Of a DNA stretch of 32,000 nt, positions 9,102 to 15,589 are shown piece after piece. Under the pieces are notes generated by a model. It saw only the letters and a list, made by a program, of their open reading frames with translations, did no database searches and was not told the origin of the DNA. A program made the position numbers and the translations under genes. Origin of the DNA: Bigelowiella natans nucleomorph (taxonomy: Eukaryota; Protista; Cercozoa); assembly GCA_000002455.1 (NCBI GenBank), contig DQ158857.1, positions 30,001-62,000 of the forward strand. The letters run 5' to 3'. Within the stretch, counting starts at the first letter, position 1. Each line of letters opens with the position of its first letter.

Positions 9102-9374
9102 ATGAGTGAATTATTAATTTGGATAACAAATAAAATGGGAGAAAAGTTTCAAATTATTTGCAAGTAATAGGTTTTTTTTAGATCGACTGATACAGTATTA
9201 GAGTTGAAGAAAATTATTGCTCTTTATAGAAATACCGACTGGAGACGAATGAATTTGATTAAAAAGTTTAAATTTTTAAATAGCTCCGTTTATTTAATAG
9301 ATTTTCTTACTTTAGAAGACTACGAAATTAATAATGAATCTTGTATAGAGTGTGTGGATTCATTAAATATGTAA
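9102..9374 (+). CDS. hub1: Ubiquitin-like splicing modifier Hub1/UBL5
   Basis: 18-nt introns at 9164-9181 and 9266-9283. Product ...NKMGEKFQIICKSTDTVLELKKIIA..TDWRRMNL..LTLEDYEI matches UBL5 (NDRLGKKV.VKC..DDTIGDLKKLIA..T.W...LGDYEIH). Confidence 0.88.
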
Positions 9375-9507
9375 TTACAAGGACTACCTTATGGTCTAAT
9401 TTTTTGAAATTCATCAAAAGCTCAAATATTTTTCTTGAAGGTAAATGTGTTTTACAGAGTAATCTTTTTTTAGGACTATAAAGAACTCTAAACTAATCCA
9501 ACAATGA

Positions 9508-9580
9508 TACTCTCAATGGGATTTGAACCCACGACTTGCGGTTCATAAGACCACCGCTCTACCATCTGAGCTATGAGAGC
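9508..9580 (-). tRNA. trnI-UAU: tRNA-Ile(UAU), intronless
   Basis: GCTCTCA TA GCTC-AGATGGTA-GAGC G GTGGT-CTTATGA-ACCGC AAGTC GTGGG-TTCAAAT-CCCAT TGAGAGT A. Confidence 0.95.
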
Positions 9581-9586
9581 ATTAAA

Positions 9587-9672
9587 TTCGAGTCCATCTC
9601 CTTAACCACTCGGACACAGACGCGTAGCCGCGCCTGACAGGATTCGAACCTGTGCGGTAAAAACCAATGGAT
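9587..9672 (-). tRNA. trnS-CGA: Circularly permuted tRNA-Ser(CGA)
   Basis: The 3' half (9672-9629: A TCCAT TGGTTTTTACCG C ACAGG-TTCGAAT-CCTGT CAGGCGC G) precedes a 5-nt linker GCTAC and the 5' half (9623-9587: GCGTCTG TG TCCGAGTGGTTAAGGA G ATGGA CT CGA A). Acceptor and anticodon stems pair fully; long variable arm and G73 fit Ser. Confidence 0.93.
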
Positions 9673-9920
9673 TAATCTTAACTATTACAATTCTATTAAT
9701 ACATAGACTTCCATGATTAAGCATAGCTACACTATATGAAACTGCATTTCGTAGTCTTTTTTTTGAATTTCTCATTTGAGTGTTATATTGAGTTCGTATT
9801 AATACATTATCAATATGCCATACCATTTTGTTCTAGTTAATATATAAATTAAGTATAATATTTTTTCGATAACTTCACTTTAAATGTGAAAAATAAGTTG
9901 GAGTGCATAGTGGCTTTAAT

Positions 9921-10018
9921 AGCAGAAATCCTGCAAAAATTATGTCGTGGGTATATAAAATCCCTGAACTTAGATTAGTTAAAGAAAATTCAGAACAATT
10001 TCCCGACCAGGTAAGTAC
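9921..10018 (-). ncRNA. Miniaturised U1 snRNA
   Basis: 5' GTACTTACCTGG, closing helix GTCG (10007-10004) with CGAC (9947-9944), Sm site AATTTTTG (9941-9934) and terminal hairpin GCAG-GATTT-CTGC, in the canonical U1 order. Confidence 0.85.
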
Positions 10019-14829: not shown

Positions 14830-15524
14830 TTACATCATAAAATATGAATTGTAATATTTTAAAATAATTAAATGTTCTCTGAATAAAAAAATGGATTTAG
14901 AAAAATAGCTAAATTTATGTGATAATTGAAAAATATTTTTAAAATAAGAATATTTGTTTAGTAATAGTAAAAAAAAATTATCTTTCTTAATCGTCTTTTC
15001 AACTTTTTTCCAAATATAAAATTTTTGATTGTAGCTTAATTCTTTTTTTAAAAGAAGAATCCAGTCTATAGATAAACTCTAAAAAATACTGTAGAAACTT
15101 GGTTATTTCGTAAATATTTATTAAAAAATAAATAATTCGATAAAAAATATTTATTGTTTTTTAATGAAGAACTCGTTTTTAGAATTATAATGAACCTTTC
15201 TGAAAAGTGGGTAATAAATCTTTTAAGCAACAGTTGTTTTATAATTTTGTTATTTTTTTCAAAGTTCAAACGAAGAGTTATTATTCTATAATTGAGTTGT
15301 CTAATGAAGGATGCAGGCTCTATATACATTTTCATGTTGTTAGTTTCTTGATAATGATTGTTAAATTTAGTTTTTTCAAGTAGAAAATTATTTTTTTTGT
15401 ATTCTTTAATTAAAGTTTTGTTGTTTTGTCTTGATGGGTGAAAATTATTGAAAAATGTATAGTCTTTAATATTCAAATTAGCTATGCTGAATATATTATA
15501 TGATATCGGATTTAGCGGTATCAT
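14830..15524 (-). CDS. Hypothetical protein
   Basis: 152-codon ORF plus a downstream open frame ending at 14830. The intron junction is not resolved. Confidence 0.5.
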
Positions 15525-15589
15525 GGTGTAATGGTTATCACGTTAGTTTAACATGCTAAAGGTTTTTGGTTCGATTCCAAATGATACTA
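15517..15589 (+). tRNA. trnV-AAC: tRNA-Val(AAC)
   Basis: GGTATCA TG GTGTAATGGTTATCAC G TTAGT-TTAACAT-GCTAA AGGTT TTTGG-TTCGATT-CCAAA TGATACT A. Confidence 0.93.

Follow-up and report, generated by a model that had tools for sequence, protein, structure and literature searches.

In the nucleomorph of Bigelowiella natans a permuted gene for tRNA-Ser(CGA) lies directly upstream of a canonical gene for tRNA-Ile(UAU) on the minus strand of chromosome II, with six nucleotides between them. The pair is best explained as a dimeric (dicistronic) tRNA gene that would be transcribed into a single precursor, from which the ordinary tRNA enzymes would release the two tRNAs, a reading to which we assign a probability of about 55%. 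The pair seems to have arisen through genome compaction, with the next tRNA occupying the place of the T-run found after most green-algal permuted Ser genes, and there is no need to invoke a dedicated mechanism that couples the two genes. It is best read as a permuted tRNA gene within a dimeric one, each of which is a known kind of gene. The window analysed here comprises 32,000 nucleotides (GenBank contig DQ158857.1, positions 30,001 to 62,000) and is AT-rich, with a GC content of 19–30%. Positions are those of the window unless a contig is named.

The permuted gene itself is already known. According to PMC3978253 and PMC4494063 it was published by Maruyama et al. 2010, and Table 1 of PMC3978253, which follows that paper, gives Ser(AGA) and Ser(CGA) as the permuted genes of the B. 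natans nucleomorph, both being of type II with the junction at 37/38 and with 5-bp intervening sequences. As the gene described here has the same 37/38 junction, the anticodon CGA and a 5-bp intervening sequence, it is the published Ser(CGA) gene, the expression of which has been reported (PMC3978253). Both permuted Ser genes are also present in A. amoebiformis, and two Lotharella species have none (PMC4494063). A fused downstream tRNA is not mentioned where these later accounts deal with the gene, and the original paper (Maruyama et al. 2010) may show the arrangement. What is new here is the adjacency of Ser(AGA) to a tRNA-Tyr gene, the retention of the Ser(CGA)-Ile pair in a relative and the contrast with the green-algal loci.

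Layout of the tRNA-Ser(CGA) and tRNA-Ile(UAU) pair

The permuted gene starts with its 3' half, which runs from A38 to the discriminator G73 (9629–9672, minus strand). This is followed on the same strand by the 5-nt linker GCTAC between G73 and G1 (9624–9628) and by the 5' half from G1 to A37, which carries the anticodon CGA (9587–9623). The 3' half thus precedes the 5' half, as in a type II permuted gene with its junction at 37/38. A full cloverleaf can be rebuilt from the two halves, with the linker closing the acceptor stem. When the cloverleaf was checked by coordinates, leaving the halves unjoined, every stem was found to be paired (acceptor 7/7, D 3/3, anticodon 5/5, T 5/5 and variable arm 3/3). 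A search of 9581–9700 with Rfam at a relaxed threshold gave a 16-bit partial tRNA match, covering the T arm and acceptor, and otherwise only chance-level matches. Owing to the permutation the internal boxes are inverted, the B box in the T loop coming before the A box in the D loop, and the variable loop contains a T5 run (9663–9659).

The spacer TTTAAT (9581–9586, minus strand), which serves both as the trailer of the Ser gene and as the 5' leader of the Ile gene, contains no T4 run. The canonical tRNA-Ile(UAU) gene follows (9508–9580, minus strand). It has A73 at its discriminator position and scores 68.1 bits against RF00005 over model positions 1–71, the gathering score being 29, and ARAGORN reads its anticodon as tat. 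Its acceptor stem is topped by a G1-U72 wobble pair, which is also present in the related contig L004 described below. In the 3' flank of the gene (9416–9507, minus strand) the first T4 run, at 9419–9416, lies 88 nt downstream. The initial annotation, according to which Ser position 37 and G1 of tRNA-Ile are parted on one strand by TTTAAT alone with no T4 run, is therefore correct to the base. As in a dimeric gene, the two members share a strand, the spacer is no longer than about 10 nt and no terminator lies between them. Upstream of the pair a TATA-like block, ATTAATAGAATT (9689–9700, minus strand), is situated 17–28 nt before A38 and is a weak candidate for a promoter element.

The second permuted gene and loci in relatives

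When the entire genome (372,870 bp in three contigs of 140,590, 134,144 and 98,136 bp) was searched by pattern, only one other permuted gene came to light, Ser(AGA), at C2:100257–100342 on the minus strand. Four nucleotides (TTGC) downstream of it begins another tRNA gene, at C2:100174–100252, which has a C1-G72 pair, A73 and CUGUAA in its loop and is on these grounds read as a gene for tRNA-Tyr(GUA), interrupted at 37/38 by an intron of 7 nt. ARAGORN wrongly calls it Phe or leaves it undetermined. Together the Ser(AGA) and Tyr genes span C2:100174–100342 on the minus strand (1399–1567 of L003). A fragment of a seryl-tRNA synthetase gene is found approximately 2.3 kb further downstream on the same strand (L139 2120–2551, minus; C2 ~97.4–97.9 kb).

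Each of the two permuted genes therefore lies directly upstream of a tRNA, for which the chance probability is 0.043, given five such positions among the 22 tRNA genes. Close spacing is also seen among tRNAs that are not permuted. Ser(GCU) is followed after 7 nt by Cys, and at C3:19018–19257 on the minus strand Trp is followed after 21 nt by Ile(AAU), then after 2 nt by Gln and then directly by a T6 run, so that Trp, Ile(AAU) and Gln likely form a tricistronic unit.

The Ser(CGA)-Ile pair is kept on a related nucleomorph contig (L004, a JGI contig from sample 3300017007), the rpl10a of which is 73% identical to that of B. natans. The gene order rpl10a, U1 snRNA, permuted Ser(CGA), tRNA-Ile(UAU), Hub1 and rpb6 is the same on both. 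In the alignment the Ser exons differ at two bases of the variable loop and are otherwise identical, and the tRNA-Ile(UAU) genes are identical throughout. The linker is CTTGA in L004 as opposed to GCTAC in B. natans, and the spacer has 8 nt, TTCTTGTA, as opposed to the 6 nt of TTTAAT. The leader and flanks have diverged and the T5 run of the B. natans variable loop is not conserved, while a TATA-like block, ATTTATAGGAATT, aligns at the same distance from the gene as the B. natans block at 9700–9689. A further block, starting ACTTACCTGG (~9921–10018, minus strand; L004 ~940–1040), is near-identical in the two with flanks that diverge, and it agrees with the short U1 snRNA that PMC6461891 describes.

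An orthologue of the Ser(AGA)-Tyr pair was sought in the relative through its neighbours. A search with the adjacent 873-aa ORFan matched only itself, and the seryl-tRNA synthetase fragment led to an ENA contig of 3689 nt (L140) in which there is no tRNA. The synthetase on this contig is 57% identical to the nucleomorph one and is split into four short overlapping ORFs, from which the contig looks like part of another mini-intron genome.

A scan of marine metagenomes gave about 15 distinct permuted tRNA-Ser loci of the Mamiellales type among the matches listed, with GC contents of 35–65%. None of these approximately 15 listed loci has a tRNA within 50 nt downstream; one of them has a tRNA-Leu at +52. 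In around two-thirds of the loci listed there is a run of T4 to T9 no more than 30 nt past position 37. With both nucleomorph loci (2/2) and none of the 15 Mamiellales-like loci listed being followed by a tRNA, the difference has a Fisher p of 0.007.

Transcription and processing of the pair

Most probably, transcription by RNA polymerase III would start before the Ser 3' half and continue across the 5-nt linker, the 5' half of Ser and the spacer of 6 nt to take in tRNA-Ile. The tRNA splicing endonuclease would cut after A37 and before A38, and ligase would join A37 to A38. RNase P would cut at G1 of tRNA-Ile and, with tRNase Z, would also open the circular Ser intermediate at the linker. To part tRNA-Ile from tRNA-Ser one of two cuts would be enough, that of the endonuclease or that of RNase P at G1 of tRNA-Ile. 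We infer the shared transcript and the order of these cuts from the anatomy of the locus and from the comparative pattern. The claim that both tRNAs come from one transcript gains indirect support from the spacing of 4–8 nt at three copies, from the retention of the pair in L004 and from the green-algal T-runs, while the stranded RNA over the pair is plus-sense only. The pair persists in L004 although the sequence of the spacer has changed, and what follows most of the green-algal counterparts is a T-run and not, as in the nucleomorph copies, a tRNA. The dimeric reading also draws support from the tight tandems elsewhere in the genome and from the predicted fold of the precursor into two separate tRNA domains. 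Against it count the intact A and B boxes of tRNA-Ile, through which this gene could be transcribed alone, the unreliability of T-run terminators in this genome and the negative search for promoter motifs described below.

A T4 run occurs within 5 nt of the end of 6 of the 17 unit-final tRNAs, compared with a background of 12.7% (p=0.015), and for the remainder the first T4 is 27–145 nt away. Five tRNA genes, including Ser(CGA), have internal T4 or T5 runs, and short T-runs probably do not halt the polymerase III of the nucleomorph. Since such runs are found inside other tRNAs and the first T4 is as far as 88 nt past tRNA-Ile, the absence of a T-run from the spacer is in itself weak evidence for read-through. 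Among the internal runs, that of Val(AAC) is in the T stem (15517–15589, plus strand), and those of Leu(CAA) (C1:61125–61205) and Ile(AAU) (C3:19091–19164) are in the acceptor stem.

The alternative that fares best, though we consider it unlikely, is that there are two overlapping independent units, with tRNA-Ile transcribed from its own A and B boxes, from a start inside the Ser 5' half, and with any read-through from Ser being incidental. In the canonical model of a type 2 promoter TFIIIC directs initiation to a point approximately 10–20 bp before the A box, and a start inside the Ser gene would agree with this. The tRNA-Ile gene has canonical A and B box regions and scores 68 bits against the tRNA model, and many single tRNAs of the genome are without a recognisable upstream TATA. 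The regions upstream of the 17 nucleomorph tRNA units yielded no promoter motif of significance, and TATA motifs at −45 to −13 were not enriched (6/17 units compared with a background of 0.32, p=0.48). Even with independent starts, however, the Ser gene would still have no terminator before tRNA-Ile and would be read through into it. The adjacency at both permuted genes and its retention in L004 also speak against independence, as does the lack of a TFIIIC B-block subunit among the proteins encoded by the nucleomorph. Neither such a subunit or domain, the import of which is possible, nor a splicing endonuclease is encoded in the nucleomorph genome, and the gene for RNase P RNA has been reported missing from it (PMC6461891), so that these factors must be imported. 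TBP is encoded at C3:40240–40852.

A more elaborate proposal is that the downstream tRNA is functionally required by the permuted gene, with RNase P cleavage at tRNA-Ile creating a 6-nt trailer needed by the splice junction and the Ile boxes recruiting TFIIIC on behalf of a gene whose own boxes are inverted. A canonical tRNA does lie 4–8 nt after both permuted genes and after the L004 orthologue (p=0.043 for the adjacency in the genome and 0.007 for the comparison with the loci listed), but we regard this proposal as very unlikely. On the canonical model, TFIIIC bound at the Ile boxes would direct initiation to a point within the 5' half of Ser. As this point lies past the Ser 3' half, such binding cannot explain how the 3' half is transcribed; with no B-block subunit encoded either, recruitment of TFIIIC for the Ser gene in this way is improbable. 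In the published model, permuted tRNAs are transcribed from an upstream promoter and not by way of TFIIIC, and a circular intermediate precedes the mature tRNA (PMC3978253).

The suggestion of a required trailer is similarly not borne out by the comparison of the loci. The trailers of Ser(CGA) in B. natans, Ser(CGA) in L004 and Ser(AGA) are 6, 8 and 4 nt long respectively, and all that they have in common is that the first two bases are TT. The partner also differs from locus to locus, being Ile in one case and Tyr in the other, and tandems of non-permuted tRNAs are equally tight. The eukaryotic splicing endonuclease measures from the body of the mature tRNA and does not need a trailer of defined length. 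As the RNase P RNA gene reported missing (PMC6461891) implies, the enzyme would have to be imported anyway. In the predicted fold of the precursor there are two independent tRNA domains in both species, with a z of about −2.5.

Also in favour of a functional requirement is the state of the junction, the motif of which has been termed a relaxed hBH (PMC3978253). All of the Mamiellales-like loci listed (L007–L119) have a G at leader position −3 that is the partner of C32, and pairing between leader and trailer is seen in all five of those that were folded, for example as a 7-bp helix in L008. In the nucleomorph Ser(CGA) copies the −3 G:C32 pair has been lost, position −3 opposite C32 being occupied by T in B. 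natans and by A in L004, only two of the four pairs of the central helix are possible at the junction, and there is no conserved leader-trailer helix. Recognition of the junction must differ somehow, given that both the −3 G and the helix have gone from nucleomorph Ser(CGA). Ser(AGA), as read from its sequence, can form a 4-bp central helix (U32-A, U33-A, A34-U and G35-U). A pairing of AGAUU with AAUUU between leader and trailer is predicted for B. natans, and as it is absent from L004 it was discarded as a conserved element. It is conceivable, although we think it improbable, that the permuted genes of chlorarachniophyte nucleomorphs gave up the terminator and the leader-trailer helix and now depend on the tRNA fused downstream. 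If so, the fold of that tRNA or its cleavage by RNase P would set the end of the trailer and thereby enable recognition and circularisation, which would be an obligatory tRNA-assisted route of maturation, undescribed for any permuted tRNA.

The stranded RNA reads over the pair run in the opposite sense. A sequence search gave 24 runs, 20 of them with the stretch, and four were mapped on 9250–9950. The only run of raw RNA reads (X24) is stranded, oligo-dT-like and 3'-biased, and its reads are almost all plus-sense, that is, antisense to both tRNAs. The plus-sense RNA has poly(A) tails after 9884 and 9893, with a depth of 40–60 near the tail (9700–9893, plus strand), and continues at a depth of 8–11 over both tRNA genes down to ~9510; it is probably a 3'-biased view of a Hub1 mRNA with a long 3' UTR. 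Loose 5' ends of the reads resemble a template-switch oligo. Over the tRNA pair the run has neither joints nor clustered ends, and it contains no minus-sense reads over 9514–9657, as would be expected of an oligo-dT-like library, which would miss such RNAs. Reads in which A37 is joined back to A38 numbered zero in the four runs, the libraries of which are unsuited to tRNA.

Two assembled contigs from two studies, X1 and X15 (2.3 and 10.2 kb), cover the whole of 9250–9950 with an 18-nt intron at 9266 removed. The missing 18 nt show that these contigs are derived from RNA, and neither carries strand information; the plus-sense polyadenylated transcript that ends at 9884/9893 explains both. The 18-nt stretch lies within Hub1 (9102–9374, plus strand) and is a spliced nucleomorph mini-intron. 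That the tRNAs are excised, in a punctuation-like manner, from long polymerase II read-through transcripts with no dedicated polymerase III unit has little to commend it: the 2.3- and 10.2-kb contigs do span 9250–9950 with the mini-intron removed, and pervasive overlapping transcription has been described for nucleomorphs (PMC6461891), but those reads over the pair for which the strand is known are plus-sense, antisense to the tRNAs, and the enrichment of T-runs after 6/17 tRNA units (p=0.015) fits termination by polymerase III.

Relation to known permuted and dimeric tRNA genes

Permuted tRNA genes raise the questions of how a gene with misordered internal boxes is transcribed and how its ends are recognised. 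The nucleomorph loci offer a compact natural test case, both permuted genes being fused to a normal tRNA and the green-algal junction helix not being conserved. If the members of the Ser(CGA)-Ile pair are simply co-transcribed, as in the dimeric reading that we prefer, they would be a further case in which compaction has brought transcription units together, of use for annotation and unsurprising.

Dimeric tRNA genes are known from the nuclear genomes of yeasts, namely tRNA-Ser-tRNA-Met(i) of S. pombe, with a spacer of 7 bp, and tRNA-Arg-tRNA-Asp of S. cerevisiae, with a spacer of 10 bp. These are co-transcribed and the tRNAs are separated by the enzymes that process tRNA ends. The nucleomorph pair resembles them in that both members point the same way on a single strand, the spacer is shorter than about 10 nt and no terminator lies between them. 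Unlike in the yeast dimers, the upstream member is permuted and its 3' boundary is a splice-type junction at A37 and not the acceptor end, so that detaching the upstream tRNA from the spacer would fall to the splicing endonuclease and not to tRNase Z.

The nucleomorph genes are like the permuted genes of Cyanidioschyzon merolae and of the Mamiellales (Ostreococcus and Micromonas) in having the 3' half first, a presumed upstream promoter and a maturation route that would pass through a circle formed by the splicing enzymes. The C. merolae and Mamiellales genes, however, stand alone, most with a T-stretch downstream, whereas the nucleomorph copies have a tRNA there instead. Similarly, in the Mamiellales-like copies listed the G at −3 pairs with C32, with leader-trailer pairing in the five that were folded, whereas the nucleomorph has no conserved helix.

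A third parallel is provided by the dicistronic tRNA-snoRNA genes of plants (Kruszka et al. 2003, as cited in PMC13578239). As outlined in that citing account, these too are polymerase III tRNA units from which a second small RNA is released by the tRNA-processing enzymes. In the plant genes the partner is a snoRNA that follows a normal tRNA, whereas in the nucleomorph both members are tRNAs and it is the first of them that is permuted.
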